This document shows positions 19,155 to 41,711 of a stretch of 64,000 nt of DNA, in pieces. The stretch is taken from the IMG/VR virus record IMGVR_UViG_3300024239_000011, positions 62,001-126,000 of that record; one strand, given 5' to 3'. The translations under genes and the position numbers were made by a program. The notes under the pieces are model-generated. The model had not been told where the DNA came from and made no database searches. It saw nothing but the letters and a program-made list of their open reading frames with translations. Position 1 is the stretch's first letter. Each line of letters begins with the position of its first letter.

Positions 19155-19248
19155 TGGAGGAAAGGGTCGGACTCGAACCGACATACCCCTGCGTTTGCAG
19201 GCACCTGATTTGCACTCAAGGACCGTCGCCTATTCCGGTCACCTTTCC
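19155..19248 (-). tRNA. tRNA-Cys(GCA) with long class II variable arm
   Basis: GGAAAGG/CCTTTCC, U73, loop GT-GCA-AA, arm CCTGC-AAAC-GCAGG. Confidence 0.8.
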
Positions 19249-19385
19249 ACAACCTTATTTACCTATTGCCACTCAAAGTAAAGTTTGAAATACGGCATGT
19301 CAACATTTGCATGCCGTAAATAAGTGGTTATTTTACCCTCGTAAACCACTATCTAAATAAGCTGGGTGCAACGAGGGGTGTTTCC

Positions 19386-19826
19386 GTGCGTGTTCTTCTA
19401 CTAGAAGAAAAAGTCAATGGACTAGAATTCGTCGTTCAGCATTTGCGAGGCGTCGGCGGAATGTCGTTCATGCTCGCAAAAGATATCAGCGAAATTGAAC
19501 CCTTTGTTTTTAAGCAACACTACGATTTTTGTTTCGTGTGTTTAAATGGTGATTATATACCGAAACTTGATTATATCAAATCGGTACTCCATCCCGAAAC
19601 CATTCTTATTTTGGCACTTGATGACGATGACAGTGTAATTACCGATATTGTTGACGACGTAATTACCGCCTCAACTAAAGGCGAACGTCTATACCGGTTG
19701 GTCGGATTGTCTATAATGCAAAAGAAACATCAGGCGTGCCCCCAAAAATTTGAAATGGTCAAATCTCTTCGGGAAATTAGGCAAATTACCAGTTATCAAA
19801 ACGTCGTGATGGCAGGTAAAGCCTAG
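19386..19826 (+). CDS. degenerate response-regulator receiver-like protein
   Basis: MRVLLLEE...YDFCFVCLN; phospho-acceptor Asp position is Cys. Confidence 0.45.
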   Translation: MRVLLLEEKVNGLEFVVQHLRGVGGMSFMLAKDISEIEPFVFKQHYDFCFVCLNGDYIPKLDYIKSVLHPETILILALDDDDSVITDIVDDVITASTKGERLYRLVGLSIMQKKHQACPQKFEMVKSLREIRQITSYQNVVMAGKA

Positions 19827-19885
19827 GACCACTTGACTACCACTATCCAAGATCGTATATTAGAACCTCCTTTGGAGGTTCCATC

Positions 19886-20134
19886 ATGAATGTGGAAATC
19901 ATTCGCGAAGTTACTCTGCGCTCGGTCGTTATGAACGTTGATCGGAGCGGTGAATTGGTTCTGGCAACCCTGTGTCGGGAATATTCCGCCAAGAACGTTA
20001 CCGTTTCCATGGTCAATAACAAGGTGCGCATCGGTAAAGATGCCTACAGGATGACCGTACAGATCGATGACGCACACGCTGACGAATTTATGACCACGTT
20101 GCTGGCTCAGATCAACACTCGTCGGGCTGCCTAA
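19886..20134 (+). CDS. hypothetical protein
   Basis: GGAGG RBS; TTGACT-N17-TATATT promoter upstream. Confidence 0.7.
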   Translation: MNVEIIREVTLRSVVMNVDRSGELVLATLCREYSAKNVTVSMVNNKVRIGKDAYRMTVQIDDAHADEFMTTLLAQINTRRAA

Positions 20135-20364
20135 TGCCCGAACTCATCATTCGCGAGAAACAAGTACAACCGCGTGGCGCTCATTACCCACTACCCACGG
20201 CGATGATCTCGGTCATGCTGTCTAATGGGAAGAACGAGACACTGCTTCAGAGTTTCCCCGACCGCGAAGGGCTAGTTGGTGCAAATATTGACCAGTTGCG
20301 CATCCAGGCGACCGAATACGCCACAAGGGTGGCTGGCGTTCTTGGATGTAAAATCAGTCAATAG
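20134..20364 (+). CDS. hypothetical protein
   Basis: stop/start overlap with previous gene. Confidence 0.65.
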   Translation: MPELIIREKQVQPRGAHYPLPTAMISVMLSNGKNETLLQSFPDREGLVGANIDQLRIQATEYATRVAGVLGCKISQ

Positions 20365-20613
20365 GCTGCCTGATCCAATCGTCCTCATCATCGCGAAATT
20401 CCCAGACACATCCCGATTCATGTCCATGGTGTGGTCCATTACCGACCGCCATGGTTTGTTGGCTTGCTGGTTTCTGATCAACCATGCTTGTTTGACGGCG
20501 TTGATCAACGCCCTCTGGAAATCCCGCCATAACGGGTAAATTGGCGGGGTGCTAAGCACCCCACCTTTCCGGGCGCTTCATACGCCGCTGTACAAAGTCC
20601 CGATCTGCGTACA

Positions 20614-20874
20614 TCATACCTCACAACGCAAGGGTGCGTAAGCGTACCGGTGATGCAAACAATCCAGATGCTCTAACACGATGGTGCTGACCGCGCCAAG
20701 GTGATCGAATAAACTGGCTGACACCAGCGGACCCCAGTGAATTTCGCCATTATGAAAACGAAGGAATTTCTGCGTGGACAAATCCTTGATCGTGTATACC
20801 ACGTTCGGGTCCACATGCTGGGTGTCTTCGGAGGGTAGTACCACCGAGGCAGTAATCGGAATTTCAGTAGTCAT
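20614..20874 (-). CDS. hypothetical protein
   Basis: overlap with HNH gene. Confidence 0.6.
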   Translation of the reverse strand: MTTEIPITASVVLPSEDTQHVDPNVVYTIKDLSTQKFLRFHNGEIHWGPLVSASLFDHLGAVSTIVLEHLDCLHHRYAYAPLRCEV

Positions 20875-21215
20875 TTCAATCCTTTCAAAAGCCGCTGTGA
20901 ATCGCGGTAAGCTTTATCGTAAGATGAACCAATGATTCGGTAAAGATCATTCGGGTGTAAACCCTCGACCCACCTCTTACCCCCACTGATGTGGAACTGT
21001 TCTGCCTTCATATGGCAGCCATTTTCACCATCACACAAAGAGATACCGTTGCTGGCGACATAGCCGCCATTTGGCATCAAATGGCGATCTGTGATGTGGT
21101 GAGCATCAAGCTTATATTTCGATGCAGGCTTGCTGCAAATGCGGCACTTATTGCCGTCCCGTTTGAACACAGCCTCACGGAATGCGTCGCGCACTAATTG
21201 TTTCTGTTTAGCCAT
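20871..21215 (-). CDS. HNH endonuclease
   Basis: FKRDGNKCRIC...DAHHI...NGISLC...CH. Confidence 0.85.
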   Translation of the reverse strand: MAKQKQLVRDAFREAVFKRDGNKCRICSKPASKYKLDAHHITDRHLMPNGGYVASNGISLCDGENGCHMKAEQFHISGGKRWVEGLHPNDLYRIIGSSYDKAYRDSQRLLKGLK

Positions 21216-21236
21216 GGTCTTTTAGTTGGTCGAGAA

Positions 21237-21319
21237 TGGTGCCGGGTGAGGGACTCGAACCCCCGATGTTTGTATCCCGACTTACGAAGTCGGTGCTGTC
21301 GCCGCTGAGCCAACCCGGC
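21237..21319 (-). tRNA. tRNA-Thr(CGU), 12-nt variable region
   Basis: CCGAC-TT-CGT-AA-GTCGG. Confidence 0.88.
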
Positions 21320-21681
21320 AGACAACCATTCTAATGACCTTGGTGCGGGATTCCCGATTCTCCACCCGCCCCACCCCGCTGAAGGACCATACATCCTTCT
21401 CTTTGTGGCTTGCTACGAGGTCATGCAATTTCTGGATCGTATCTTCTCTACACCACCCAAGGTCATAACGCCTCATTAGGCAAGTCTATTTATCAGTCCC
21501 CGGAGGTCTTAGTCAATCATTATATCGTGCGGACCACGGATACCACGACCACCGACTGGGTGGTTTTCAAATTCTTCCCCGAGAACATCATAAGAACAAT
21601 CGTCACAAACCCAGCCTTCTTTGGCTTCATGCATCCCAGTGATGTCAGGGGACAATTCGATTTTGCACTTGGCACACTGCG

Positions 21682-22125
21682 TCATTTCGATCCGCCCAAC
21701 TTGATTGTGAGAAACTGCCCTAGCGAGACATCGAACCAGTTTGTGTAGTTCCCACAGCTTCCGAGAAGGAACGGGGTCTCGTCTTTAACCACAGCCGGGT
21801 CAATTTGTATCGCATGCAAGTCGGTGATCTCTACAACCGACGACACCCACTCTAATTTACCCCACTCCGGTCCCGCAACGTCGAACTCACTGCCACCATG
21901 ATCGGTGCAATAGAAGTCGTCCACGTCCTCATCGTACAGCCCAATTCCATAAAAGGAATAGCTCCCCTTGGTACACATGTTGGTGTATCGAAACAACCGA
22001 CCGCGCTCCCGGAACAACTGTGCCACATCTTCCTTTGTGTTAGGCATAAGCGTTCCACAGACAGTGCAGCGGTACCCGTTCTCCCGTTTCACCGTGAATG
22101 ATCGACAATCGTGGCACTGAAGCAT
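21682..22125 (-). CDS. hypothetical zinc-ribbon protein
   Basis: CHDC...CTVC. Confidence 0.6.
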   Translation of the reverse strand: MLQCHDCRSFTVKRENGYRCTVCGTLMPNTKEDVAQLFRERGRLFRYTNMCTKGSYSFYGIGLYDEDVDDFYCTDHGGSEFDVAGPEWGKLEWVSSVVEITDLHAIQIDPAVVKDETPFLLGSCGNYTNWFDVSLGQFLTIKLGGSK

Positions 22126-22140
22126 CGTCTACCTGCGTTT

Positions 22141-22207
22141 TGGCGTCCCCGAACCTGCGACCTTCAATTTAGGAGATTGACGCTCTTCCAATCTGAGCTA
22201 CGGGGAC
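22141..22207 (-). pseudogene. tRNA-Arg(CCU) pseudogene with T-arm deletion
   Basis: intact acceptor, D and anticodon arms; T arm reads GCAGGTT then CGGGGAC, about 10 nt missing. Confidence 0.8.
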
Positions 22208-22562
22208 TTGAAAAGTTGAAATTATATATCATGGCATGTGCAGCGGATCAATCTTGCTGTTATGCCTATACCGATAAAAGCGATTAATTCATAAATAGAT
22301 TCGTAGTAACAGGGTGGGTAAATGCTAAAGGTAGTAAGCTACACACCGTTTCCAAAACGAACCCCCGAAAGGGCGGAACTGAAGGTCGTTGTCTCCAACG
22401 AACGTCCTCAGATGTCCCTATCTGATATTGTGGTTTCGTGGTGGCTTTTCCCGCTAATCCTGTTGACCAAAACCTACAGTTTCTCATTCACGTATGTGGA
22501 AAAAGAACGGGCGGCTCGATAAGCCGCCCGTTCCTTTTTGAAGACCGCCGAGAATATTGGTC

Positions 22563-22961
22563 TTAGTTAACCGACAGGGCGCTGTTGGTGTCGTCCACCT
22601 TCACCTCGAACCAGCCGCCCCGGCTGTAGCCTCGCGCCCATCGAGCGCGAGGGGTCCACGCGCCCATATCGAAGGCATCCAGGGACAGCTTGTCACCCTT
22701 GGACAGACCCAGGCTGGCAGCCACGTCTTCCGGCAGACGGAAACGGTTGCGGGTATTGTTCTTCTTGCTCACCAACACGGTAGCGGTAGCCGCCTTCTTC
22801 TCGGCATCGGTCAAAGCGACGCCAGCCGGGACGAACTTGATCAGGGTGTGTTCGCCATGCTTGGTGACGACGATGGTCATGGTGCCGACCGAAGCGACAT
22901 TCGACTTGACGGTGATCTCGGTCTTGGCAGTGACGGGGGCGGTAGCGGAAACGTGGGTCAT
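22563..22961 (-). CDS. hypothetical protein
   Basis: GGAGA RBS, strong codon bias, terminator downstream. Confidence 0.75.
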   Translation of the reverse strand: MTHVSATAPVTAKTEITVKSNVASVGTMTIVVTKHGEHTLIKFVPAGVALTDAEKKAATATVLVSKKNNTRNRFRLPEDVAASLGLSKGDKLSLDAFDMGAWTPRARWARGYSRGGWFEVKVDDTNSALSVN

Positions 22962-23162
22962 GGCGATCTCCTGTCTCTCTTTTGGGCGGTTTCGAACCGC
23001 CGAACCATGAGTAGATACTACCAGGGGTTTGATACCATGTCAACAGGTCGGACAACTTTTTCTTCGATTTTCTTTAGCATACAAGAACAACAAGTAATTC
23101 CATTTTGTGGACGACTTTCATGTGGACATAAATATGGCTTTAACCCGGTCATGAGGTGAAAC

Positions 23163-23516
23163 ATGTTGGCATTTCGTCTAACTGCAATTCACGATAATAA
23201 TATCAGCAGACTACCAGAATACGACGGAATACCAATTTACCAAGCGGAAGACTGGCTCCGACATGCCGATATTTCATCAGACCAGTACACAATTCGTTAT
23301 ATTCATCACGCCGATGACCGGGACGAATATGATCTTGTGTTTGAATCCAGCGACCTCATGCAGCAGTTCATCGCCGCTGTCGTTGCACCAAAGGCGCCGA
23401 TCATGATGGTGAATACCACGTGTCCGTATTGTGGTTATCTGACGCCGGTAGCGTCATCCGCCAAAGCCATTGAGCGGCTAAGTGTTTGTCCAGATTGCAG
23501 GAAAAAGGGGGCTTAA
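23163..23516 (+). CDS. hypothetical protein with C-terminal zinc ribbon
   Basis: CPYC...CPDC. Confidence 0.6.
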   Translation: MLAFRLTAIHDNNISRLPEYDGIPIYQAEDWLRHADISSDQYTIRYIHHADDRDEYDLVFESSDLMQQFIAAVVAPKAPIMMVNTTCPYCGYLTPVASSAKAIERLSVCPDCRKKGA

Positions 23517-23529
23517 GCCCCCTTTCTCT

Positions 23530-25083
23530 TTACCAGTGTGCCAAGATCAGCGGCGTGTCTTGATAAGACTGCCAAATTCGTTCGGTGATATATGGCATCA
23601 TCGGATGTGCCAGACGTAGGCATTGATCGAGGCACCGCATAATCGTTCCCAATGCATCCATGTCGTTCTGATCGTACAAACGATCCTTGGACGCCTCGAT
23701 GTACCAATCGCAGAACTCGTGTTTGAAGAACAATCGGAACGCATCCGCCGCTGCTCGGTAATCAAATGCATCCAGGGCATTTGCCATAGTACGTTTTGTT
23801 TGATCGAGTGATGCGAGGATACGCAGATCATCAGGATGTTGAGACTCGTTCCAGGCAGATGGACGACCCATCCGGTCGAAATGACTGAGACAGAACCGCG
23901 AGGCTTGCCACAGTTTGTTTGCGAACCGTTTTGCAGAATCGAAAATATCGTTCGACAATCGGATATCCTGCCCGGCGGTACCGTTCTCCAAGAACCCGAA
24001 CCGCAAAGCGTCACATCCGAATTTTTCGATGATTAGCAGAGGATCAATGCCGTTTCCCTTCGACTTACACATTTTTTCCCCATTGGCGTCACGAATGATG
24101 CCGTGGAGATAGATGGTGTCAAATGCCATCTGATCGGTCAGGGCAAGCCCCATCATCAACATACGGGCACACCAGAAGAATAGGATGTCCGCTGCCGTCT
24201 CGATCATACTCGCCGGGTAGAAAGTTCGCAGATCGGGCGTGTCGTTTGGCCAGCCCAAAATGGCGAAGGGCCAAATTGCGGACGAGAACCATGTATCAAG
24301 GACATCGTGATCTTGTCGGATGTCATCCCCCAGAATAGCTCTGGCATCCGCCTCTGTACGTGCCGCGCAAAAAGCACCAGAACCGTTGTACCAAATCGGG
24401 ATACGGTGTCCCCACCAAATCTGACGCGAAATACACCACGGCTCGATGTTTTCGAGGAAATGACAGAAGGTTTTCCCTTCATATTCCGGGATAATCTTTA
24501 GTTCACCCGCATGATAACGTGCAAGAAGGTCGGTAGCCAGTTGACTAGTGTCCAACCACCACTGCCCATCCTGACGGTAAATCAATCCTTTTTCGAAACA
24601 CCGGTTGAACGCCTCTAGGGTGGCGGTGGGATGTTCGGGGCTAAGCGTATACCATTCGCGCGACCAATCACAGCTTGCGCCCAGACGGCGAATTTGCTGG
24701 GTGATGCGCCCACCCGTCGTTTTCTGCCATGCATCTGCTTTGGCAAAATACTGGTCACGGGTTGGTTCGGTAATCCCTTCGGCGGCAAGCTCAGCCTTAA
24801 TCTTAGCATCGGTTGCCAAACCCGCATGATCAGTACCGGGCTGCCATAGTGCATTAAAGCCCTGCATGCGCTTGTACCGGATCGTCGTATCCTGAAGGGT
24901 GGTGAAAAGTGCATGCCCCATGTGCAGTTGCCCAGTGATATTGGGCGGCGGCATTGGGATGTTGAAGGCTGGTGCCTCTGGGTTCATGCTTGGCTTAAAA
25001 AAGCCATTATTTTCCCAATGCGCGTAGATGTTCGGTTCTTCGGTTTTATAGTCGAAGTTCCGAGTTAGTTTGTTACGTCCCAC
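23530..25083 (-). CDS. valS: compact valyl-tRNA synthetase lacking CP1 editing domain and C-terminal coiled coil
   Basis: PPPNITGQLHMGHAL, PGTDHAG, WCISRQIWWGHRIP, DVLDTWFSS, DILFFW, KMCKSKGN; only 517 aa; start uncertain. Confidence 0.92.
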   Translation of the reverse strand: MGRNKLTRNFDYKTEEPNIYAHWENNGFFKPSMNPEAPAFNIPMPPPNITGQLHMGHALFTTLQDTTIRYKRMQGFNALWQPGTDHAGLATDAKIKAELAAEGITEPTRDQYFAKADAWQKTTGGRITQQIRRLGASCDWSREWYTLSPEHPTATLEAFNRCFEKGLIYRQDGQWWLDTSQLATDLLARYHAGELKIIPEYEGKTFCHFLENIEPWCISRQIWWGHRIPIWYNGSGAFCAARTEADARAILGDDIRQDHDVLDTWFSSAIWPFAILGWPNDTPDLRTFYPASMIETAADILFFWCARMLMMGLALTDQMAFDTIYLHGIIRDANGEKMCKSKGNGIDPLLIIEKFGCDALRFGFLENGTAGQDIRLSNDIFDSAKRFANKLWQASRFCLSHFDRMGRPSAWNESQHPDDLRILASLDQTKRTMANALDAFDYRAAADAFRLFFKHEFCDWYIEASKDRLYDQNDMDALGTIMRCLDQCLRLAHPMMPYITERIWQSYQDTPLILAHW

Positions 25084-25162
25084 ATGGTCATTTCGTTATC
25101 CTCCATAGTTTGAGTGACCAACCAAAACGATAAACAAATATTTTGGCTATGGCTATTTATTT

Positions 25163-25510
25163 TTGTTAGAATCCGGGGGAAAGCGAGGAATCATGCTTAA
25201 CTTTTTTTTGCGTGTGAATAACCCCTTTAAAAAGGATACCCATTCAAATTTCCACCATCTATGGGGCTGGCACAAATCATTGACCCAATATAGGGAATTC
25301 GAAATCGAAACATATTATAGTCCGATGATCGTTGATGTTGAAATTGTGTTTGAAATGAAGGGACGTGATCACGCTGGTCCCCGAATCACCATTGGTATAC
25401 TTGGATGGACAATTAGCGCATCAATCTATGATAATCGCCATTGGGATTATGATGCCGGATATTGGGAACAGGATGTGGTAGGGGATGACGGTACTGCCCC
25501 GCCTTCGTGA
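25163..25510 (+). CDS. hypothetical protein
   Basis: 115 aa ORF. Confidence 0.6.
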   Translation: MLESGGKRGIMLNFFLRVNNPFKKDTHSNFHHLWGWHKSLTQYREFEIETYYSPMIVDVEIVFEMKGRDHAGPRITIGILGWTISASIYDNRHWDYDAGYWEQDVVGDDGTAPPS

Positions 25511-25540
25511 CCGTTATGAGCGGTCGGCATTACTTTTATG

Positions 25541-30240: not shown

Positions 30241-30323
30241 TATTTATCTCAACCATAATCAAATGTCAATTTTCCCTGACGCCCGGCATAAATATATAAA
30301 ATCAAAACAGGAGTCAACAAACA

Positions 30324-31610
30324 ATGGGCATTAAAGTGTATAATACTACTTTAGGTGGGATTAATTTTAAAACACCAACCACGTTGAGTGACCCATACTT
30401 ACAAAATGTTGTCCTTCATATTGATAGTAGTTTGCCTCAATTATCAGACAAAACAGGAAAAATATTTACTAAATATGGCACTGCTTCATCTGGAAATTCG
30501 GGGTTTAATGCTGCCTATTTTGATGCAAATACTTATTGGGAAATAGACTCCATTTACGATTGGGGTCTTTCAGATTTCACGTTTGAATACGAAATATATC
30601 ACAATGCCACACCTACCACTGGTGGTATTTTCGGCTATCGTGCATCATCAACCGATAATTTTTCAGTATATTATGGTTGGCCAACCACAGGCTATCATAT
30701 GATATTAAATGATGTTGAATTAATAGGAACAACAGCGGTTCCGCCGGTTGGGCAATTTCAACATTATGCATGGTGCCGTAAGGGTAATACGTTAACTCTA
30801 TATATCGATGGTGTGCTTATAACCACAAAATCATTTACAGGCTCATTAACAAAAAACTTACCAAAAATGTTTTTAGGTTGGATCAATTTTGGAAGCGCAT
30901 TTAATGGTATGATAAGAAATTTCACATTCACCAAATCATGCCGTTACCTTTCTAATTTCACGCCATCAAATTTGGATAGAAATCAACTCAACGACCCGTT
31001 ATGGAATTCGGTGGTATTTCATATACCCGCTTCTGGATCAAATGGGTCATTGCTTAAAAATACAAAAACTAATAATACATTAGTACGACATGGCACCTCT
31101 GCTATTATCAATAGCATTTTTACCAAAAATACAGTGTATGCAAATGGTGGTTACTACAGTACCCCAGGATCAATTGATTTTCAATTTGGACGTGATGATT
31201 TCACTATTGAAATGTGGGGGTATGATTTAACTCGCTCAGCAGAAGCACCGTGGATCAGTACCGGATGGGTCAATACCAATTCATGGGTAATTCATCCACA
31301 GCATTCCAGTCATAATTTTTCATTTTGGTCACAAGCATACGGAACAACCAATCCAATCGTTAAAGGACCAGCATTGCCACTACGCGAATGGGTTCATGTT
31401 GCCATATCAAGACAAGCAGGAACTACCCGGTTGTTCAATAATGGAACACTTGTTGCAACAAGTACGGTCAATTATAATATAACCAACCCAACCCTATTAC
31501 CATTCGAAATCGGGCACGAAAGTCCATTAACAAGAACCGTCAATGGATGGTATGCTGATATTCGAATTACCAAAGGCGTATCAAGATATAATCAATCATT
31601 TACCGTTTGA
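30324..31610 (+). CDS. virion protein with two LamG/concanavalin-like domains
   Basis: duplicated DP...VV.HI...DFT.E...W.H.A..R.G....LY.DG...F.G.I...R.TKG..RY..NFT; late promoter, AT-rich. Confidence 0.85.
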   Translation: MGIKVYNTTLGGINFKTPTTLSDPYLQNVVLHIDSSLPQLSDKTGKIFTKYGTASSGNSGFNAAYFDANTYWEIDSIYDWGLSDFTFEYEIYHNATPTTGGIFGYRASSTDNFSVYYGWPTTGYHMILNDVELIGTTAVPPVGQFQHYAWCRKGNTLTLYIDGVLITTKSFTGSLTKNLPKMFLGWINFGSAFNGMIRNFTFTKSCRYLSNFTPSNLDRNQLNDPLWNSVVFHIPASGSNGSLLKNTKTNNTLVRHGTSAIINSIFTKNTVYANGGYYSTPGSIDFQFGRDDFTIEMWGYDLTRSAEAPWISTGWVNTNSWVIHPQHSSHNFSFWSQAYGTTNPIVKGPALPLREWVHVAISRQAGTTRLFNNGTLVATSTVNYNITNPTLLPFEIGHESPLTRTVNGWYADIRITKGVSRYNQSFTV

Positions 31611-34421: not shown

Positions 34422-34505
34422 TGGCGATCCTGAGAGGATTCGAACCCCCCTTTTCAGCATCCGACTACGGTTAAGCGGGTAGAAGCCGCCCCCGGCTACA
34501 GGATC
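34422..34505 (-). tRNA. rearranged tRNA-Arg(UCU)-like gene
   Basis: perfect acceptor and T arms; anticodon arm 8 nt after acceptor; GGAT-GC-TGAAAA after it. Confidence 0.7.
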
Positions 34506-35094: not shown

Positions 35095-35111
35095 GTGATT
35101 TGGTGGAGCGA

Positions 35112-35738: not shown

Positions 35739-36004
35739 ATGCAGTCCCTCAAAATCATTGATGTGACAATTTTATTTATCACGTAACGATTTTGAGTTCC
35801 GCCTACCACAGTGCGCGTACTCAGCGCATGTCGTGAATTTGGAAACAATGGAGCCAGCAACACCGGGCACCAACCACACATACATTCCGATGTTCACAGA
35901 CGCCAGCAAAGCGCAACTGATGCGTAAACTGCTGCTCAAGGCAAATCCCGATGGGAAATTTGCGGTCGCTACTGTTCGTGGCATGAAGCTGCACTTTGAG
36001 TAAA

Positions 36005-36079
36005 TGGCGCGGGTACGGAGAATCGAACTCCGACTCCTTGAGTGGCGCTCAAGTAGACACCCCAGTATCTTATACCCGC
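36005..36079 (-). tRNA. tRNA-Gly(GCC) variant (C33, G73)
   Basis: CTTGA-GC-GCC-AC-TCAAG; identical copy at 40691. Confidence 0.75.
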
Positions 36080-36157
36080 ATAGAAACGTGCGAGCCTACT
36101 GCGGTGAAGTGGCGGCTGAAGCCCACTCAACGATATAATCGTTGCCGCTTTCCTCAT

Positions 36158-36235
36158 TGGCGTTCCCGGAGGGAGTCGAACCCCCAACCTTCGGATTCGT
36201 AATCCGATGCTGCTATCCAGTTGAGCTACGAGAAC
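36158..36235 (-). tRNA. tRNA-Arg(ACG)
   Basis: canonical. Confidence 0.92.
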
Positions 36236-36242
36236 ATTGTTT

Positions 36243-36331
36243 TGGCACGGGTGTGAGGAATTGAACCCCTTCGGCATCCACCTGAATTTTTGTGCCACTG
36301 GGTTTGGAATCCAGCTTCAGGAAACACCCGC
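36243..36331 (-). tRNA. rearranged tRNA-Trp(CCA)-like gene
   Basis: loop TT-CCA-AA, G73; CCTGAA before the anticodon arm pairs with TTCAGG after it, then GGAT-GC. Confidence 0.65.
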
Positions 36332-36335
36332 GTAA

Positions 36336-36411
36336 TGGCAGGGGATGAGGGAATCGAACCCCCTCTGCAAGGTTTTGGAAACCCGCCGACTTCCAGTTAT
36401 CTTAATCCCCT
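36336..36411 (-). tRNA. tRNA-Trp(CCA)
   Basis: canonical, G73. Confidence 0.9.
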
Positions 36412-36412
36412 A

Positions 36413-36487
36413 TGGTGGAGTAAACGCGAATCGAACGCGCCGCAACCGCATTGCGAATGCAGTTCGCCCCCTTGGTCATGCTACCCC
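36413..36487 (-). tRNA. tRNA-Ala(CGC)
   Basis: G3-U70, loop TT-CGC-AA. Confidence 0.88.
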
Positions 36488-36548
36488 AATGTGATTAATT
36501 GTGGTTGATCCACTAGAGTGATATTATCCTCATCCGAAAGGGGAGGAC

Positions 36549-36830
36549 ATGCGCACTCTTGTTCTCATTTTCATGCTATTCTTGGTCGCATGCCGGGATG
36601 ATTCCAGACGTGCCAACCTTGTCTGTACCTTTGAGTCAGACACCTTCCATTGGAAAATCGATACCGAGAAAGCCGAAGTCAGCGGCGACCGAATCGAAAC
36701 AACGGAAGTAAAAATAAGCAATCTGTCTTACGTGTTCACCTCGGGTACCGTCAACATCGTCATCCGGCGCACAGATTGGCAAGCCTGGATTCACGGGAAC
36801 GGACAATCAATCCAAGGAAAATGTAAGTAG
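36549..36830 (+). CDS. putative small lipoprotein
   Basis: GGAGG RBS; lipobox LVAC. Confidence 0.7.
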   Translation: MRTLVLIFMLFLVACRDDSRRANLVCTFESDTFHWKIDTEKAEVSGDRIETTEVKISNLSYVFTSGTVNIVIRRTDWQAWIHGNGQSIQGKCK

Positions 36831-36833
36831 AAA

Positions 36834-36909
36834 TGGCTCCCGACCCAGGTACCGCCCCTGGCAGCCATCGCTTAACAGGCGAGTCCGTTCGCTTGCTCGG
36901 TCGTCGGGA
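36834..36909 (-). tRNA. tRNA-Asn(GUU), non-canonical T loop
   Basis: loop CT-GTT-AA; T loop GGCGGTA. Confidence 0.8.
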
Positions 36910-36916
36910 ATAAATG

Positions 36917-37008
36917 TGGCTCCCACTTGAGGTTTCGAACCTCACCCCGCATCGCTGCGAGACTTCCGGTTAACAGCCGGATACCTTCACCAAGCCGGTC
37001 CAGTGGGA
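36917..37008 (-). tRNA. tRNA-Asn(GUU) with long variable arm
   Basis: TCCGG-CT-GTT-AA-CCGGA; arm CTCGCA-GCGA-TGCGGG. Confidence 0.85.
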
Positions 37009-37574
37009 ATGAATTCATTCTGAAGTTTCTGCCATCGCTTACGGACGGCGGCTTCAGAAACACCTAACATATCTCCAATTTGCATAAATGTTTTTGTCTT
37101 ACGCAATTCGATAAGATCAACCGTTTCCCAGCGAACTTTTCCATGCAGCGAACCGGCGCATTTCCACGAACAAGTCAAATTGGTTGTTGGTTTTGATTGC
37201 CCGCAAACAGGGCATTCATCGGTGGGAACACTGGTACGGTGGGTTTTGTACTCTGCAAATTGTTCATTAAATGATGGTGCTGTGCTAGGAACCTCAATCA
37301 ACCCATCGTGTATCTCAGCATGGCAACGATTGCATACCAAAACACACTTCCGTAATTCTTCAACAATAGCCGACCACGATTGCGGGTTCGCACGAATTGC
37401 ACCAAAATGAAATTCTTTTTGTGACGGATCACGGTGGTGGAAATCAAACGCCCGCAACGAGCGACTGTAACCACAAACACAACATTCTCCACCAAAGGCA
37501 TCAACCATTCTTTGCTTAGTACGTTCGCGCCAGCGCCGAACTGCTTCACTTCCTCTTGACATCCAACACCTCAT
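36987..37574 (-). CDS. HNH endonuclease; 3' end overlaps tRNA-Asn 5' end
   Basis: CCVCG...FDFHHRDP...ELRKCVLVCNRCHAEIH. Confidence 0.88.
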   Translation of the reverse strand: MRCWMSRGSEAVRRWRERTKQRMVDAFGGECCVCGYSRSLRAFDFHHRDPSQKEFHFGAIRANPQSWSAIVEELRKCVLVCNRCHAEIHDGLIEVPSTAPSFNEQFAEYKTHRTSVPTDECPVCGQSKPTTNLTCSWKCAGSLHGKVRWETVDLIELRKTKTFMQIGDMLGVSEAAVRKRWQKLQNEFIPTGPAW

Positions 37575-37622
37575 AGTCGAACCGGACTATGAGTATTTAG
37601 CAAACCTTGTTAATTATGGATA

Positions 37623-37712
37623 TGGAGGACACGGTGGGAATTGAACCCACGAGGGGCTTTCGCCCGTGCGATTAAAAGTCGCATGTTCTCAACCAACAAG
37701 AACGTCGTGTCC
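37623..37712 (-). tRNA. tRNA-Lys(UUU) with class II arm, U73
   Basis: TGCGA-CT-TTT-AA-TCGCA; arm GGGC-GAAA-GCCC. Confidence 0.82.
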
Positions 37713-37720
37713 ATAAGAGT

Positions 37721-37806
37721 TGGAGGACCGGTGGGGAATCGAACCCCTTATCGCACGGTTTAAAAGACCGCTGCCCCCACCAGGGTGGCTGTAACGTTCC
37801 CGGTCC
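37721..37806 (-). tRNA. tRNA-Lys(UUU) with about 10-nt insert before the D arm, U73
   Basis: GCGGT-CT-TTT-AA-ACCGT. Confidence 0.78.
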
Positions 37807-37871
37807 AATCGTTTTCGATCAAGTTCCGGTTTTCGTTTTCGAAGCATAGCTTCACCTTTCACTTAGGATTT

Positions 37872-37956
37872 TGGAGCGGGTAGGGGGAATCGAACCCCTT
37901 TCCAGTTAAGGGCTTGCTTGGAAGGCAAGTGAGCAATCCATTGCTCGACTACCCGC
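37872..37956 (-). tRNA. tRNA-Gly(UCC) variant, long D stem and variable region
   Basis: CTTGC-CT-TCC-AA-GCAAG. Confidence 0.82.
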
Positions 37957-37968
37957 ATATTGTGATGT

Positions 37969-38056
37969 TGGAGACGCGAGTGGGAGTCGAACCCACCTGA
38001 CCTTTCGGTACAAACGGTTTTGCAGACCGCCGACTAAACCGCTCATCCATCGCGCC
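37969..38056 (-). tRNA. tRNA-Cys(GCA) with class II arm
   Basis: GCGGT-CT-GCA-AA-ACCGT; arm ACC-GAAA-GGT; U73. Confidence 0.85.
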
Positions 38057-38065
38057 CGTTTAAAT

Positions 38066-38151
38066 TGGTTGCTGGATGCACCCTCTCACATCCCGGTCGA
38101 GCGTCCACGACCTTTCAGATCAAGTAACGACACCGCTTATCGGGGTCCAGC
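38066..38151 (-). pseudogene. degenerate tRNA-like sequence (Phe-like loop)
   Basis: GCTGGA/TCCAGC-AACCA, weak CT-GAA-AG hairpin, no clear T loop. Confidence 0.35.
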
Positions 38152-38248
38152 ACTCCCGACTCACCGTTGCATGCCGATAACCCCATGTCGTCGGGGTCGT
38201 CAGCAGGGGCTTCGGTGAGGGTAGGCGATAGGTGAACATCGCCTATCT

Positions 38249-38323
38249 TGGTAGTCGGAGAGAATTTCGAAATCTCGCCCTCACGCTTATCAAGCGTGCG
38301 CTCTGCCTCTGAGCTACCCGACT
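38249..38323 (-). tRNA. tRNA-Ile(GAU)
   Basis: canonical. Confidence 0.9.
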
Positions 38324-38330
38324 ATAAAAT

Positions 38331-38404
38331 TGGTAGTCCCTGGCGGAATCGAACCACCATCAAACGCTTATCGGGCGCTCGCACTACCGTTGTGCTAAGG
38401 GACT
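38331..38404 (-). tRNA. tRNA-Ile(GAU), C33
   Basis: loop CC-GAT-AA. Confidence 0.85.
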
Positions 38405-38413
38405 AAAAGGATA

Positions 38414-38660
38414 CGGTCGCAACAGGTAGGAATCGAACCTTTCCAGACCAAGGATTATCAACACCGATTTCTGTTGATAACGAAGGGGATCGAACCCTTC
38501 ATCTACCGGCATGCCTTTACAGGGTGGTACCCGACCAGGGCTGTTACTTACCTTGACACCTCCGACATTGCTCCCTCCCCGACATCCGGAGTAGGAGAGT
38601 TCACGCCGTTTTCGGTGCTTCGGTCAACGGTTGACCCCGGCATCAATCTCCACTATCCTA
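38414..38660 (-). ncRNA. candidate RNA with T arm, closed acceptor-like stem and second T arm
   Basis: GAAGGG-TTCGATC-CCCTTC, TTATCAACA/TGTTGATAA, CCTTGG, AGG-TTCGATT-CCT. Confidence 0.45.
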
Positions 38661-38667
38661 CTCGCGG

Positions 38668-38786
38668 TCTGCTGTAGGATCAGTTGGTAGAGAGAACCAC
38701 CCCTCGTGAGGCGTAAGCCTCCCGGTGAAGGACCGTAATGCCGGGGATAATGGTTGGCCGTGGGTTCGAGTCCCACCAGCAGACCA
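38668..38786 (+). tRNA. opposite-strand tRNA-like gene with 51-nt anticodon loop
   Basis: TCTGCTG/CAGCAGA, AGTTGGTA D loop, AACCA/TGGTT stem, GTGGG-TTCGAGT-CCCAC. Confidence 0.6.
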
Positions 38787-38802
38787 CTTTAGATGTTAAC
38801 AT

Positions 38803-38877
38803 TGGTGGGTCTGGGTGGGATCGAACCACCTCTCTTCGGCGTGTCATACCGACGCTTTCCCAATAAGCTACAGACCC
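38803..38877 (-). tRNA. tRNA-Val(GAC)
   Basis: canonical. Confidence 0.9.
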
Positions 38878-38887
38878 AATGAAGAAA

Positions 38888-38971
38888 TGGAGAACCGTGG
38901 AGGAATCGAACCTCTTAGCCACCGGGTAAGAGCCGGTTGCGGACCCCAGTCATCGTCTTGGCGCACGGTTC
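38888..38971 (-). tRNA. tRNA-Lys(CUU) with insert before the D arm, U73
   Basis: ACCGG-CT-CTT-AC-CCGGT. Confidence 0.78.
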
Positions 38972-38978
38972 ATTGATT

Positions 38979-39053
38979 TGGTGGAGCGTATCGGAATCTC
39001 ACCGATCAGGCTAGAATCTTGCAAGGATTCTCCGGGTACATAGCCCACGCCCC
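38979..39053 (-). tRNA. non-canonical tRNA-Ala(UGC)
   Basis: G3-U70, no D-loop GG, T loop TGAGATT. Confidence 0.78.
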
Positions 39054-39059
39054 ATGTGG

Positions 39060-39135
39060 TGGTAGGTCTTCCGCGAATCGAACGCGGTCAATAACACCAT
39101 GTCACGGTGTTGCCTTCCCATCTGGCTCAAGACCT
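39060..39135 (-). tRNA. tRNA-Val(GAC)
   Basis: loop GT-GAC-AT. Confidence 0.87.
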
Positions 39136-39674
39136 ATTGAACGTTTGGTAGTTGGTGTCGTGAGCCAATCACCAAAAACACCAGCCACCCTAATTTCACG
39201 TATCTTATCGACTAACAAAAACCACGCTTCATATGGCATGTCGCGGCGTAATAAATTGCACCTAATACAACAAGCAACCACATTATCCATTGTGTGACCA
39301 ATGCTATTATTCTTTCGGTCAACTGTCATGGTTATTGTCGTCTCACCACAATACGAACAACCATTTGCAATCAATTCATCAACGAACTTAATAGAAAGGT
39401 CGTTTTCCAATCCTCGTTTGCGGTCAGACTTGCGCGAATCTTCAACAATGTATTTTGCACGATTGATACCGTGTTGACGTTCAAATTTTATTTTTGCTTG
39501 TTTCTTCTCTTCACGCCGTTTTCGGGAATCTAAGGTTTCGTATGTTCTGGCACGTGATTGATCACATTTCCGGCAATACACCTTCGGGTATCTTCTTCCT
39601 TTTACGGTTCGCATACCAAATGAAGTGATCGGCAATACTTCTCCGCAACTCGAACATATTTTAGTCTCACACAT
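39102..39674 (-). CDS. HNH-type endonuclease; 3' end overlaps tRNA-Val
   Basis: CSYCG...TVDRKNNSIGHTMDNVVACCIRCN; N-terminal zinc finger. Confidence 0.85.
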   Translation of the reverse strand: MCETKICSSCGEVLPITSFGMRTVKGRRYPKVYCRKCDQSRARTYETLDSRKRREEKKQAKIKFERQHGINRAKYIVEDSRKSDRKRGLENDLSIKFVDELIANGCSYCGETTITMTVDRKNNSIGHTMDNVVACCIRCNLLRRDMPYEAWFLLVDKIREIRVAGVFGDWLTTPTTKRSIGLEPDGKATP

Positions 39675-39734
39675 TTTTAACCTCTTTTGGTACTCGGGGA
39701 TTATGTATTTATCACCGAGTACCAAAAGATAGTT

Positions 39735-39816
39735 TGGAGCCGGGTGCGGGGTTCGCGCCCGCCCAGTCTAAGCCCGCTCTCGCGGTCGAACGCAAAGACT
39801 GCCTCTCGGCACCGGC
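39735..39816 (-). pseudogene. degenerate tRNA-like gene with enlarged anticodon loop
   Basis: GCCGG/CCGGC-T-CCA, GCGGG/CCCGC T stem, AGTCT/AGACT enclosing 26 nt. Confidence 0.4.
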
Positions 39817-39953
39817 ATAAAAAATTGATAAATGATGACTAGCCCCAACTCATCGCCGCCATCAACGAACCACCATAACAGCAGTCCTTGCCTAACTTGG
39901 TCTACCCCAATAAAACCTAGTTTTATAGCATAGATGCTATGCTAAATACTTGC

Positions 39954-40727
39954 ATGGAACCAAACATTATAAATGAAATACGGTCGAAGCGACGTGATGG
40001 ATATAGTCTTCAGTGGCTATCTCGTGAATATAATGTCGCAGTTGGCACCATACGATACCATACTAAGGGCATCCTTGTTAATAAAACCCCACATACATTG
40101 ATACAAGAGAAGCCAATCATCGTACCAATACCATCCGAGGATTGGGCATATTTTTGGGGATTTTATACTGGGGATGGTTGTTTAACGCAAATGACAAGAA
40201 GTTATTCAATAAGTATTTCCTGTGACATCAAGTATGAATATTTGATTGCGAATTATAGTGCTATTCTTTCTGATTTATTCAGACGCGAAGCAAAAATTTA
40301 CAAAACCAAACGGAATTGTGCAATCGTTCGTATTCACGGGGTTGACCTACCCAACATTCTTCAGCTACCACCGGGGGCGAAAACTGAAGAGTATAAAGTC
40401 CCAGAGTGGATATTTTCAGATAGAAAATACGCAGTTCAATTTCTAAAAGGTCTTATAGAAACTGACGGAAGTTGTTACCGACGAGATATAACACAATATG
40501 GTGTCATGTTCACTCAAAAAAACAAAACGATATTCGACTATTACAGCACCGCAATGTCTCTTTGTGATTACTCATTTACCAAGAGTAAAGGTAATGCTTA
40601 CCAAGCACAGACATCAACCAAAAACGGTGCAAAGGAAATGATTGATGAATTAAGGCTTCATCAAAAGATGCGAACATATTCAAGAAAAAATGGCGCGGGT
40701 ACGGAGAATCGAACTCCGACTCCTTGA
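39954..40727 (+). CDS. LAGLIDADG homing endonuclease with N-terminal HTH
   Basis: AYFWGFYTGDG and FLKGLIETDG; CTAAATA at 39942. Confidence 0.88.
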   Translation: MEPNIINEIRSKRRDGYSLQWLSREYNVAVGTIRYHTKGILVNKTPHTLIQEKPIIVPIPSEDWAYFWGFYTGDGCLTQMTRSYSISISCDIKYEYLIANYSAILSDLFRREAKIYKTKRNCAIVRIHGVDLPNILQLPPGAKTEEYKVPEWIFSDRKYAVQFLKGLIETDGSCYRRDITQYGVMFTQKNKTIFDYYSTAMSLCDYSFTKSKGNAYQAQTSTKNGAKEMIDELRLHQKMRTYSRKNGAGTENRTPTP

Positions 40728-40765
40728 GTGGCGCTCAAGTAGACACCCCAGTATCTTATACCCGC
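40691..40765 (-). tRNA. tRNA-Gly(GCC) variant, exact duplicate of 36005..36079
   Basis: 75/75 identical by eye. Confidence 0.75.
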
Positions 40766-40783
40766 ATTGTGTTGGTGTAGAAA

Positions 40784-40858
40784 TGGTGGAGCATATCGGA
40801 ATCAAACCGATCAGGCTATCATACTGCCAGCATGATCCGGGTACTCAGCCCATGCCCC
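40784..40858 (-). tRNA. non-canonical tRNA-Ala(GGC)
   Basis: G3-U70; same scaffold as 38979 and 42089. Confidence 0.78.
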
Positions 40859-40863
40859 ATTAT

Positions 40864-40939
40864 TGGTGCCACCACCCGGATTCGAACCGGGAACCTTCAC
40901 TTTACCAAAGTGCTGCTCTACCATTGGAGCTATAGCGGC
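40864..40939 (-). tRNA. tRNA-Thr(GGU), uninterrupted
   Basis: canonical. Confidence 0.92.
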
Positions 40940-40949
40940 TTGAATTTTT

Positions 40950-41534
40950 TTAATGTATACGCAGCCCGCGTGATTTTCTCCCATTCCCCCTGTTTTTTCC
41001 TTTGGACGTGGGCATCAGAGAATGGCAATTCGGGCAAAGTAAGCGAATATTTTCAGGTTTATTATTCGAAGCATCTCCATTGACATGATCTAGTTCAAGG
41101 CTCAATGGTTGACCGTGCCAATCGGAAATGCCGCATTTTTCACAACAATTACCTCGAATTTTTCTAAGGTAATTTTTCAGAGTTTTCCTTTCTGAAACTA
41201 ATCCATTTTCTATTTTTGGTAATGTTTCTTGAGTGAACTGGTAATCTCGCTGGCATTTATGAGAACAATATGTCCTTATTGCACGATTTTCACCCGTAAT
41301 TTCATTTCCGCAATTAAGACAAAAGCATTTCTGAAAATTTTCAGCAGCGTAAAATAGACCAGAGCACCGTTGACAGCAGAACCTATTCTTTCGCATATCA
41401 TACGGTAATGGCTGTTTGCAGTATTCACAACACGATGGACTTATCTCATAAGTCCGTATTTTTTCTTGTTTTATGAGTTTAGCTTTCTCTGCCCATGCTT
41501 TTCCGCCGAGTTTCCCTGCTTCTGATTTGTTCAT
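40950..41534 (-). CDS. HNH homing endonuclease, third paralog
   Basis: ELDHVNGDASNNKPENIRLLCPNCHS. Confidence 0.92.
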   Translation of the reverse strand: MNKSEAGKLGGKAWAEKAKLIKQEKIRTYEISPSCCEYCKQPLPYDMRKNRFCCQRCSGLFYAAENFQKCFCLNCGNEITGENRAIRTYCSHKCQRDYQFTQETLPKIENGLVSERKTLKNYLRKIRGNCCEKCGISDWHGQPLSLELDHVNGDASNNKPENIRLLCPNCHSLMPTSKGKNRGNGRKSRGLRIH

Positions 41535-41622
41535 TATGTCCTCTACGTATAGTATCCTACGACACTATTTATTTCGGAGAATATAGTGGATATAAACCAG
41601 TCAAGGGCTGGGAGAATATATT

Positions 41623-41711
41623 TGGAGAACCGGGTGGGAATCGAACCCACGACGGGCTTTCGCCAGCAGTTTAAGAGACTGTTCCTACCAACCAACAGTA
41701 GGCTCCGGTTC
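41623..41711 (-). tRNA. tRNA-Lys(CUU) with class II arm, U73
   Basis: ACAGT-CT-CTT-AA-ACTGC; arm GGC-GAAA-GCC. Confidence 0.82.

Follow-up and report, generated by a model that had tools for sequence, protein, structure and literature searches.

Long variable arms on phage tRNA-Lys and on other phage tRNAs that are normally of class I

Textbook tRNA-Lys, tRNA-Asn, tRNA-Cys and tRNA-Gln are class I tRNAs with a variable loop of 4–5 nt. Here, we report that a huge phage carries tRNA genes of these isotypes with a variable-arm hairpin of the kind found in class II tRNAs, and that its long-arm tRNA-Lys genes almost certainly belong to a conserved family. The stretch analysed, called the window throughout, comprises bases 62,001–126,000 (64,000 nt; GC 48.7%) of one 543,035-bp virus record, IMGVR_UViG_3300024239_000011, for which CheckV gives a completeness of 100%. 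A preliminary description of the window had listed long stem-loop variable arms on two Cys, one Asn and two Lys genes and extended variable regions on two Thr genes and one Gly gene, and had proposed either anticodon-swapped Ser or Leu bodies that cause mistranslation or cognate tRNAs reshaped to evade host nucleases. The class-II-shaped tRNA-Lys proves to be a conserved and widespread type of phage gene that is already present in cultured model phages. This conservation and spread in phages, the structural mixture of the gene set and the reading of the Gly gene as an 8/4 tRNA are the points on which the present analysis goes beyond that description.

Long-arm tRNA genes in the window

tRNA genes were called with ARAGORN, scored with the Rfam covariance models for tRNA and for selenocysteine tRNA (tRNA-Sec; threshold 47 bits) and folded with ViennaRNA without a tRNA prior. 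ARAGORN found 37 tRNA genes in the window and at least 66 genome-wide, nearly all of them on the minus strand and inside approximately 100 kb, and several further genes that it missed were recovered with Rfam. Genes are named here by isotype and first position in the window. Those with a stem-loop arm are as follows.

37623–37712, minus strand: tRNA-Lys(UUU), 90 nt, 7/5, U73-CCA; ARAGORN, Rfam tRNA model 44.4 bits
41623–41711, minus strand: tRNA-Lys(CUU), 89 nt, U73-CCA, paralogue of Lys 37623; ARAGORN, Rfam tRNA model 35.3 bits
36917–37008, minus strand: tRNA-Asn(GUU), 92 nt, G73-CCA; ARAGORN, Rfam tRNA model 37.4 bits
37969–38056, minus strand: tRNA-Cys(GCA), 88 nt, 7/5, U73-CCA; ARAGORN, Rfam tRNA-Sec model 50.6 bits, tRNA model 43.7 bits
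19155–19248, minus strand: tRNA(GCA), here Cys 19155, 94 nt, U73-CCA, acceptor stem starting GGA; ARAGORN score 113

The five arms that had been described were recovered by ARAGORN at their exact coordinates on the minus strand, and it also recovered the extended variable regions of Thr 21237 and Thr 43418 (12 nt) and of Gly 37872 (13 nt), which contain no real stem. CCA is encoded by all of the listed genes, and we have very little doubt that these are real genes. The variable region of Lys 37623 is 16 nt long, with a 4-bp stem, a GAAA loop and a 3-nt 3' spacer, and that of Lys 41623 is 14 nt long, with a 3-bp stem, a GAAA loop and a 4-nt spacer. Cys 37969 has a 16-nt region with a 3-bp stem and a GAAA loop, together with a 6-bp anticodon stem and an acceptor stem typical of tRNA-Cys. 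The 20-nt region of Asn 36917 (6-bp stem, GCGA loop, 1-nt spacer) has Ser-type geometry, and the 21-nt region of Cys 19155 includes a 5-bp stem and a 5-nt spacer. Cys 19155, Asn 36917, Lys 37623 and Lys 41623 each have a cloverleaf with five arms as their minimum free energy (MFE) structure, at z from -1.9 to -4.7 (-4.72 for Lys 37623, -2.18 for Lys 41623 and -2.03 for Cys 19155). An extended D stem of 7 bp with a 5-nt loop can form in both Lys genes, whereas the D arms of the long-arm tRNA-Lys of related phages are ordinary. Cys 19155 is the weakest call, as it matches only the tRNA-Sec model (32.2 bits) and not the tRNA model of Rfam.

A variable stem-loop of more than 10 nt, which is characteristic of class II tRNAs, is present in Cys 19155, Asn 36917, Lys 37623, Cys 37969 and Lys 41623 and absent from the Thr pair and Gly 37872; the anticodons of the five (GCA, GUU, UUU and CUU) are not those of the class II isotypes Ser, Leu, Tyr and Sec. 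The set is structurally mixed, consisting of hairpin arms, unpaired loops and one 8/4 tRNA. Two long-arm tRNA-Gln genes lie elsewhere in the same genome, outside the window. A selenocysteine reading of the tRNA-Sec model matches at 37969, 37872, 19155 and 37722 (an irregular gene described below) was rejected on their anticodons (GCA, UCC and UUU) and U73. The introns with other anticodons proposed by the intron mode of ARAGORN were judged spurious, as the arm loops are just 4 nt long and the standard parse is conserved across phages.

Conservation in related huge phages

Ten related IMG/VR records, several of them 390–580 kb long, were collected using the open reading frame (ORF) at 39102–39725 and the short ValRS gene of the window as queries. 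Outside Ser, Leu and Tyr, the variable regions of at least 10 nt among the 399 tRNA genes of these records and this genome are concentrated in a few isotypes, namely Lys (13 of 28 genes), Gln (4 of 18), Asn (3 of 15), Cys (3 of 9), Thr (3 of 18), Gly (2 of 24) and Met (2 of 20). No such region was seen on a gene for Ala, Arg, Asp, Glu, His, Phe, Pro or Val. Five of the relatives (G005, G006, G007, G009 and G010) each have four tRNA-Lys genes, namely a normal and a long-arm gene with the UUU anticodon and a normal and a long-arm gene with CUU. In the genome studied here the long-arm pair was found and no normal tRNA-Lys was detected. Both Lys anticodons are thus retained as a long-arm pair in six genomes.

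Arm length and sequence vary widely. The arm stems of orthologues differ in sequence and keep their pairing, and are capped by GNRA or UUCG loops. The variable regions of 88 unique long-arm Lys genes fold better than shuffled sequences (Wilcoxon p = 2.7e-9), and a GNRA hairpin was observed in 32 of the 88 genes, with 2.0 expected. A strain variant of Asn 36917 has GGGA in place of the GCGA loop, which is GNRA either way; no difference inside Lys 37623 was seen among the best-supported strain variants listed. Hence, given the better folding, the enrichment of GNRA and the loop class kept in the strain variant, the arm hairpin is probably under selection.

Distribution in viruses, cultured phages and prokaryotes

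Viral sequences were scanned for a Lys anticodon loop and the T arm of the family at long-arm spacing, a pattern in which Lys anticodons are preselected and which undercounts the family because it is bound to one T-arm sequence. It matched at least 118 viral stretches, and ARAGORN confirmed at least 98 long-arm tRNA-Lys genes, at least 77 of them unique, in at least 78 viral loci. The same pattern gave 68 matches in 185,579 prokaryote species genomes. Approximately 45 of these were ordinary tRNA-Leu(UAA) and were discarded, and approximately 17 are long-arm tRNA-Lys, every one within an array of 8–31 tRNA genes; the scan of these genomes revealed no lone chromosomal long-arm tRNA-Lys. The T-arm motif itself is not specific and was dropped as a marker of the family.

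Cultured phages also carry the genes. Homologues were recovered by BLAST from 23 records of Caulobacter phages, among them phiCbK, Rogue, Karma, Magneto and Swift, and from six records of Brevundimonas jumbo phages. In phiCbK, a Lys(CUU) gene of 87 nt and a Lys(UUU) gene of 91 nt adjoin Leu and Ser genes, and this long-arm pair represents the sole tRNA-Lys genes found in the tRNA array. Rhodobacter phage RcXuper has an annotated 88-nt tRNA-Lys of the long-arm type, and Xanthomonas phage BUDD has a 90-nt tRNA-Lys and an 86-nt long-arm tRNA-Asn. The copies in cultured phages are mostly annotated plainly as tRNA-Lys, though the BUDD genes are unannotated. The phiCbK genome paper gives the tRNA gene count and is silent on the arm (PMC3556154), and a full-text literature search found no description of long arms on class I phage tRNAs.

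An association of the long arm with hosts that have a class I lysyl-tRNA synthetase (LysRS) was considered and dropped as a rule, since ancestry confounds it. Class I LysRS is the only LysRS in four of the five metagenome-assembled genomes (MAGs) with chromosomal arrays, and all four are Alphaproteobacteria. An Acidobacteriota MAG with class II LysRS carries arrays too, and the LysRS of Xanthomonas, the host of BUDD, is class II.

Arm geometry and relationships of the tRNA bodies

In the tRNA-Ser genes of these phages there is mostly 1 nt between the arm and the T stem, and in their tRNA-Leu genes 1–2 nt, while in their tRNA-Tyr genes 3–4 nt come after a short hairpin of the CCGAAAGG type. The arms of the long-arm Lys, Cys 37969, Gln, Trp, Met and Gly genes consist of 0–1 nt, a 3–5-bp stem, a tetraloop and 3–5 nt. 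Most arms are therefore of the tRNA-Tyr type and not of the Ser type, with Asn 36917 as the exception: the arm typical of SerRS substrates (5–7 bp with a spacer of approximately 1 nt) is matched by that gene only (6 bp, 1 nt). Recognition by SerRS hinges on the orientation of the arm, and one bulged base abolishes charging by this enzyme (PMC7590224).

The pairs G1:C72, G2:C71, A3:U70 and C11:G24 are all present in Cys 19155. An acceptor stem starting GGA is also found in Lys 37623 and many members of the Lys family, and is absent from Asn 36917, Cys 37969 and Lys 41623. In the set from this genome, A73 is confined to the Gln genes and Thr(CGU), both with cognate bodies; LeuRS and TyrRS need A73. 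Across the long-arm Lys family, 48 genes have A as the discriminator and 38 have U; among normal phage tRNA-Lys genes, U73 is present in 8 of 45. We had considered U73 as a block to SerRS and dropped this idea, as U73 allo-tRNAs are reported to accept serine.

Bodies were compared by profile scoring after excision of the variable region and masking of the anticodon (leave-one-out accuracy 73–78%; at approximately 70 nt the signal is weak) and by a tree built on the same masked alignment, which is poorly resolved with only 64 columns kept. In the profiles, the top score of the Gln, Gly, Asn and Cys 37969 bodies goes to their own isotype, alone or in a tie, with Cys 37969 best as Cys and Gly 37872 best as Gly. 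The Thr pair was best as Thr in one run and ambiguous in the second. The best-scoring isotype is Lys for 50 of the 88 long-arm Lys bodies, Tyr for 11, Arg for 10 and Ser for 2. In the tree, the three long-arm Asn genes (36917 and those of G005 and G009) form a clade (support 88) nested among normal Asn genes, and Cys 37969 is sister to a normal tRNA-Cys. Nine of 13 long-arm Lys genes form a clade with Cys 19155 (support 94), which lies apart from the normal Lys clade (support 91) and adjoins Tyr weakly. A derivation of the Lys family from tRNA-Tyr was considered and is only weakly supported by this tree. With bodies that are mostly cognate, 2 of 88 Lys bodies scoring as Ser, mostly Tyr-type arms and, in the set from this genome, A73 on cognate bodies only, anticodon-swapped Ser or Leu bodies are not supported as a general account of these genes.

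Cys 19155 had been described as having a Ser-like body with a GCA anticodon and U73. The anticodon and discriminator are correct. The Ser-like body is borne out by the profiles, in which Ser is the best score in both runs, and by the acceptor stem, which is one pair away from that of the phage's tRNA-Ser(GCU), but not by the tree, which nests the gene in the long-arm Lys clade. An origin from tRNA-Ser(GCU), as the acceptor stem suggests, was rejected on this placement. Judged from its sequence, Cys 19155 looks like a member of the long-arm Lys family with a changed anticodon. Because the family already had U73, such a shift to GCA would have given the gene both major identity elements for CysRS at once.

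Identity elements, codon use and synthetases

The phage encodes AspRS, MetRS, IleRS, TrpRS and a ValRS without an editing domain, together with GlyRS-, HisRS- and GluRS-like fragments. Genes for LysRS, AsnRS, CysRS and SerRS were not found in the phage genome, so host enzymes must charge the long-arm tRNAs, and the sole match to the GlnRS/GluRS family in the genome is a short GluRS/GluQRS-like fragment. LysRS, AsnRS, CysRS, GlnRS, GlyRS and ThrRS read mainly the anticodon and the discriminator or acceptor stem. When compared with the cognate identity elements established in Escherichia coli, the Asn gene retains GUU and G73, both Cys genes GCA and U73, and the Lys genes U35 and U36. Gly 37872 has G1:C72, C2:G71, G3:C70, U73 and C35C36, and the Thr genes have G1:C72, C2:G71 and G35U36. 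Tagged long-arm tRNAs can take identities other than Ser (PMC7590224), and CysRS charges long-arm tRNAs with U73 and GCA or UCA (PMC5389517). From these elements, it is rather likely that the long-arm tRNAs are charged with their cognate amino acids.

In 160 long ORFs of the phage, 5.2% of all codons are AAA or AAG (AAR), and AAR codons specify the KMSKS lysines of the phage's own synthetases. Because these codons are frequent and lie at catalytic KMSKS lysines, an AAR decoder that inserts serine would be costly.

In the window, the ValRS gene (23530–25083, minus strand) encodes 517 aa and lacks the CP1 editing domain, with approximately positions 175–350 of the valS profile missing; this short form is conserved over its full length at approximately 50% identity in nine huge-phage contigs. 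A stand-alone YqeY-like protein is encoded at 48839–49438 (minus strand). The YqeY domain is a tRNA-binding appendage in some GlnRS enzymes.

Genes with enlarged loops and irregular tRNA genes

The remaining genes of the set and two irregular genes from the same array are listed here.

21237–21319, minus strand: tRNA-Thr(CGU), 83 nt, unpaired A/C-rich 12-nt variable loop; ARAGORN, Rfam tRNA model 53.0 bits
43418–43500, minus strand: tRNA-Thr(UGU), 83 nt, G73, unpaired A/C-rich 12-nt variable loop; ARAGORN, Rfam tRNA model 48.6 bits
37872–37956, minus strand: tRNA-Gly(UCC), 85 nt, U73-CCA; ARAGORN, Rfam tRNA-Sec model 45.8 bits, tRNA model 40.9 bits
34422–34505, minus strand: irregular tRNA-like gene, G73-CCA; ARAGORN, Rfam 26.3 bits (under threshold)
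37722–37806, minus strand: irregular tRNA-like gene with a UUU anticodon loop; identified by reading of the sequence, Rfam tRNA-Sec model 35.8 bits, no ARAGORN call

The two Thr genes are 91% identical when the variable region is excluded, and the relative G007 has a comparable loop of 11 nt. Gly 37872 is better read as an 8/4 tRNA that resembles tRNA-Sec and the allo-tRNAs. Its MFE structure (z = -3.75) has an 8-bp acceptor stem, a 4-bp T stem, a 6-bp D stem and a tetraloop; positions 49:65 are mismatched, 8:65 are able to pair, and the 13-nt variable region is without a real stem. The 8/4 fold with its 6-bp D stem and tetraloop accounts for the near-threshold score with the tRNA-Sec model. 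An 8/4 or 9/3 branch was found only in Gly 37872 and some tRNA-Ser genes, and the Lys, Asn, Cys and Thr genes are 7/5. The 8/4 tRNA-Ser genes are at genome positions 158026–158116, outside the window, and in G007 and G010 (loci L066 and L069); such tRNA-Ser were previously reported for phages (PMC5389517).

In the gene at 34422, the anticodon loop (CUUA) is 8 nt long and the 15-nt variable region forms a weak stem of 3 bp; the fold of this gene is not better than that of shuffled sequence in ViennaRNA. The gene at 37722 has the acceptor GGACCGG and U73-CCA. Its D stem has 6 bp, its variable region is short, and approximately 10 additional nt follow the acceptor stem.

Other tRNA genes of this and related genomes depart from the standard form in different ways. 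A homologous hairpin insert of approximately 40 nt lies directly 3' of the anticodon in tRNA-Gly(GCC) at 17179–17289 and tRNA-Thr(GGU) at 18141–18252 (window, both minus strand). The two inserts, which are the only copies genome-wide, share the ends AAGCCTAT.AGGCG ... TAGGCTT and are far below the size of a group I intron. Five short tRNA-Leu genes (genome positions 153953–154029, 155226–155303, 160625–160701, 161572–161648 and 161938–162014, outside the window) are 77–78 nt long and class-I-shaped, with A73, a 5–6-nt variable loop and no long arm. Other viral tRNA arrays commonly contain short tRNA-Leu genes too, with at least 33 among the scanned long-arm Lys loci. In the window, the D arm is short and atypical and the T loop unusual in three tRNA-Ala genes (38979–39053, 40784–40858 and 42089–42163, minus strand), a near-identical pair of CAU tRNAs with an odd T loop (41903–41975 and 42291–42363, minus strand) is detected by Rfam and not by ARAGORN, and a CCU tRNA-like gene (22144–22207, minus strand) is without the 3' half of the T arm. 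The relative G001 (392 kb) has a 91-nt amber-suppressor tRNA (CUA) with a 6-bp variable arm (locus L034, 15532–15622).

Genomic setting

HNH and LAGLIDADG homing-endonuclease genes are interspersed among the tRNA genes of the window. The locus was found in four DNA runs, all from one subsurface and soil study, and strain contigs from that study are without 39064–39735, which holds the ORF at 39102–39725, and 39901–40761, which holds the LAGLIDADG gene at 39939–40727. The presence or absence of these stretches among strains indicates that homing-endonuclease genes come and go between the tRNA genes. A group I intron match at 54697–54900 (minus strand) scores 52.1 bits against a threshold of 50 in Rfam. 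Further products of the window are TrpRS, the short ValRS, T4 gp30.3-like, TelA and flotillin proteins and a phage-encoded FliM-like flagellar switch protein (6291–7661, plus strand).

Genes for RNA repair are also present. An RNA-ligase-family (PF09414) gene is at 1547–2185 of the window (plus strand), and two more loci, at genome positions 14487–16685 (minus strand) and 30245–30754 (plus strand), hold a second RNA-ligase-family gene and an RtcB gene. The RtcB match is split inside one frame of 803 aa, which may indicate an insertion such as an intein. The product of 53976–54536 of the window (plus strand) has a weak, sub-threshold match to the Tpt1/KptA RNA 2'-phosphotransferase family.

What the added arm may be for

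The explanation that we favour, at roughly even odds of being correct, is cognate decoding by phage tRNAs that have an added arm, possibly to evade tRNA-cutting defences. tRNAs with class I anticodons (Lys, Asn, Cys and Gln) would have gained a class-II-style arm, and the Thr and Gly genes an enlarged loop only, the core being the conserved viral pair of long-arm tRNA-Lys(UUU) and tRNA-Lys(CUU). They would read their normal codons and receive the normal amino acid from host synthetases, and the arm would alter the shape of the tRNA beside the 3' strand of the anticodon stem, such that a reshaped phage copy could escape defence nucleases, for which tRNA-Lys is a recurrent target. Alternatively, the arm may let the phage distinguish its own tRNAs from those of the host. 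The proposal in the preliminary description that these are reshaped cognate tRNAs thus fits all of the data, while the purpose of nuclease escape that was attached to it is one that we infer, and evasion as the reason for the arm is put forward tentatively, with the balance somewhat against it. Evasion of anticodon nucleases has been suggested for phage tRNAs (PMC10264068), tRNA-Lys is the target of PARIS (PMC11464382), and the tRNA-Lys genes found here are phage-encoded isoacceptors of a nuclease-targeted tRNA. The five relatives that hold the long-arm beside the normal Lys pair are as expected if the long-arm pair is a backup set, and the RtcB gene and the two RNA-ligase-family genes bear on escape from tRNA-cutting defences. 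A more specific and somewhat unlikely version is that the arm is a self-mark by which phage Lys tRNAs, and more sporadically those for Asn, Cys, Gln, Ile and Met, go unseen by nucleases that cut tRNAs. These nucleases could be host defences (PARIS or PrrC-type) or a phage enzyme that clears host tRNAs, and translation during infection would then proceed on arm-tagged tRNAs while the host copies are destroyed.

Several observations weigh against cognate decoding with nuclease escape. LysRS and AsnRS as class II enzymes approach the variable-loop side of the tRNA, and an arm could hinder them. Approximately one-third of the family has just an unpaired loop of 11–12 nt, so that a defined hairpin is not essential. 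Several genes start with G1:C72, G2:C71 and A3:U70 as in tRNA-Ser, Cys 19155 is best as Ser in the profiles, and Asn 36917 has a Ser-type arm and G73, which makes its charging by SerRS possible. Most long-arm Lys genes of this subclade have U73 and not the usual A73, and a long arm with G73 or U73 has been taken as a signature of SerRS in work on allo-tRNAs (PMC5389517). In this analysis the arm was not tied to any particular nuclease, and the run search matched the locus in DNA runs only and in no RNA run.

A rival reading is missense decoding, in which SerRS, or TyrRS or LeuRS, charges the tRNAs via the long arm whatever their anticodon, and Ser or another residue is inserted at Lys, Asn and Cys codons in infection. 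There are precedents, as leucine is attached to nev-tRNAs whose anticodons are those of Gly or Ile (PMC3333845) and, in E. coli, serine is inserted at many codons by long-arm allo-tRNAs that have G73 or U73 (PMC5389517). Missense is possible and likeliest for Asn 36917, in which the arm and G73 reproduce the geometry of the phage's tRNA-Ser, and for Cys 19155, with its GGA acceptor start, C11:G24, 5-bp arm and best score as Ser. For the genes as a whole we regard it as improbable. Most arms have 3–4 bp and a 3–5-nt spacer, unlike tRNA-Ser, and many family members are stemless; the bodies are cognate or belong to their own Lys clade, and Ser- or Tyr-like bodies never occur with A73. AAR codons, those for catalytic lysines included, are too frequent to fit well with serine insertion, and the long-arm genes are the only tRNA-Lys found here and in the phiCbK array, with both anticodons paired in six genomes. 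A non-translational role, as a decoy or sponge for tRNA nucleases or as a substrate or regulator of another enzyme, without use by the ribosome, is supported by irregular tRNAs that are charged yet unused in translation (PMC5389517), by the normal Lys pair retained alongside in five relatives and by the RNA repair enzymes of the phage. It is equally hard to credit, given intact T loops, the D-loop GG, 7-nt anticodon loops with U33 and A37, encoded CCA and the conservation of both anticodons, and its probability is lower where no tRNA-Lys other than the long-arm pair was found, as in this phage and the phiCbK array.

The arm could also be a tolerated relic, neutral for translation, in a family that arose once, from a class II tRNA (perhaps tRNA-Tyr) whose anticodon shifted or through small insertions in a tRNA array that evolves rapidly. 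The arm geometry and part of the D arm are tRNA-Tyr-like, the Lys clade lies by Tyr with weak support, arm length and sequence vary, and the many irregular tRNA genes of the genome (anticodon-loop inserts, short Leu genes and odd D arms) suggest relaxed constraint. The retention of the long-arm pair next to the normal one in five genomes, and in phages of distant groups and hosts, makes this explanation unlikely, as do the enrichment of stable tetraloop hairpins and the loop class preserved in a strain variant. Least probable of all are prediction artefacts or dead genes. Though the Rfam tRNA model does not match Cys 19155, the tRNAs predicted at 34422 and 37722 are poor and no RNA run is among the matches, three independent methods concur for most genes, there are orthologues in many phages and the strain contigs show no decay; for the Lys, Asn, Cys 37969, Gly and Thr genes this reading is largely refuted.

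If the long-arm tRNA-Lys are charged with lysine, LysRS, with both class I and class II host enzymes implicated, would tolerate a whole extra arm, and a new, shape-based protection of phage tRNAs would be indicated. Charging with serine would instead mean programmed mistranslation in infection. The arms could also be natural templates for the design of orthogonal tRNAs.

Comparison with known systems

The genes described here share with bacterial class II tRNAs a 7/5 cloverleaf and a variable hairpin, the geometry of which is close to that of tRNA-Tyr. They differ from tRNA-Tyr and tRNA-Leu in having Lys, Asn, Cys or Gln anticodons, U73 or G73 rather than A73, and bodies that are cognate class I or of their own clade. 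The nev-tRNAs of nematodes (PMC3333845) also combine the class II shape with anticodons for class I amino acids. However, they are derived from tRNA-Leu and charged with leucine, whereas no Leu-like bodies were found here, and the A73 of their Leu identity is missing from the Lys, Asn and Cys genes, which have U73 or G73 and bodies that are not Leu.

Allo-tRNAs and the 8/4 tRNA-Ser and tRNA-His of phages (PMC5389517) are alike in their long arm, G73 or U73 and non-Ser anticodons, and allo-tRNAs are known from soil metagenomes and phage tRNA clusters, as here. Gly 37872 shares the allo-type 8/4 branch, the long D stem (6 bp) and the tetraloop, but the tRNAs for Lys, Asn, Cys and Thr are of the ordinary 7/5 type, with shorter arms. 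The published allo-type set was found with a tRNA-Sec model and includes a Lys anticodon only once (PMC5389517). Cys 37969 resembles the selC* tRNA-Cys (PMC5389517) in U73, GCA, a long arm and a longer anticodon stem, and it scores above the Rfam threshold for tRNA-Sec. The selC* genes sit in genomes with selenocysteine machinery, and those given in detail, from certain delta-proteobacteria, are 8/4, whereas Cys 37969 is 7/5.

The phage T5 tRNA-Lys that acts against PARIS (PMC11464382) is, like the long-arm genes, a phage-encoded second tRNA-Lys that differs structurally from that of the host. The known resistant phage tRNAs (PMC11464382, PMC10264068) have point changes in the anticodon stem-loop, whereas a whole arm is added here. 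Finally, tRNAs with tagged arms (PMC7590224) demonstrate that a variable-arm hairpin is compatible with bacterial translation and with non-Ser identities, as would be needed for the long-arm tRNA-Lys, though these are synthetic and built on a 9/3 allo-tRNA chassis.

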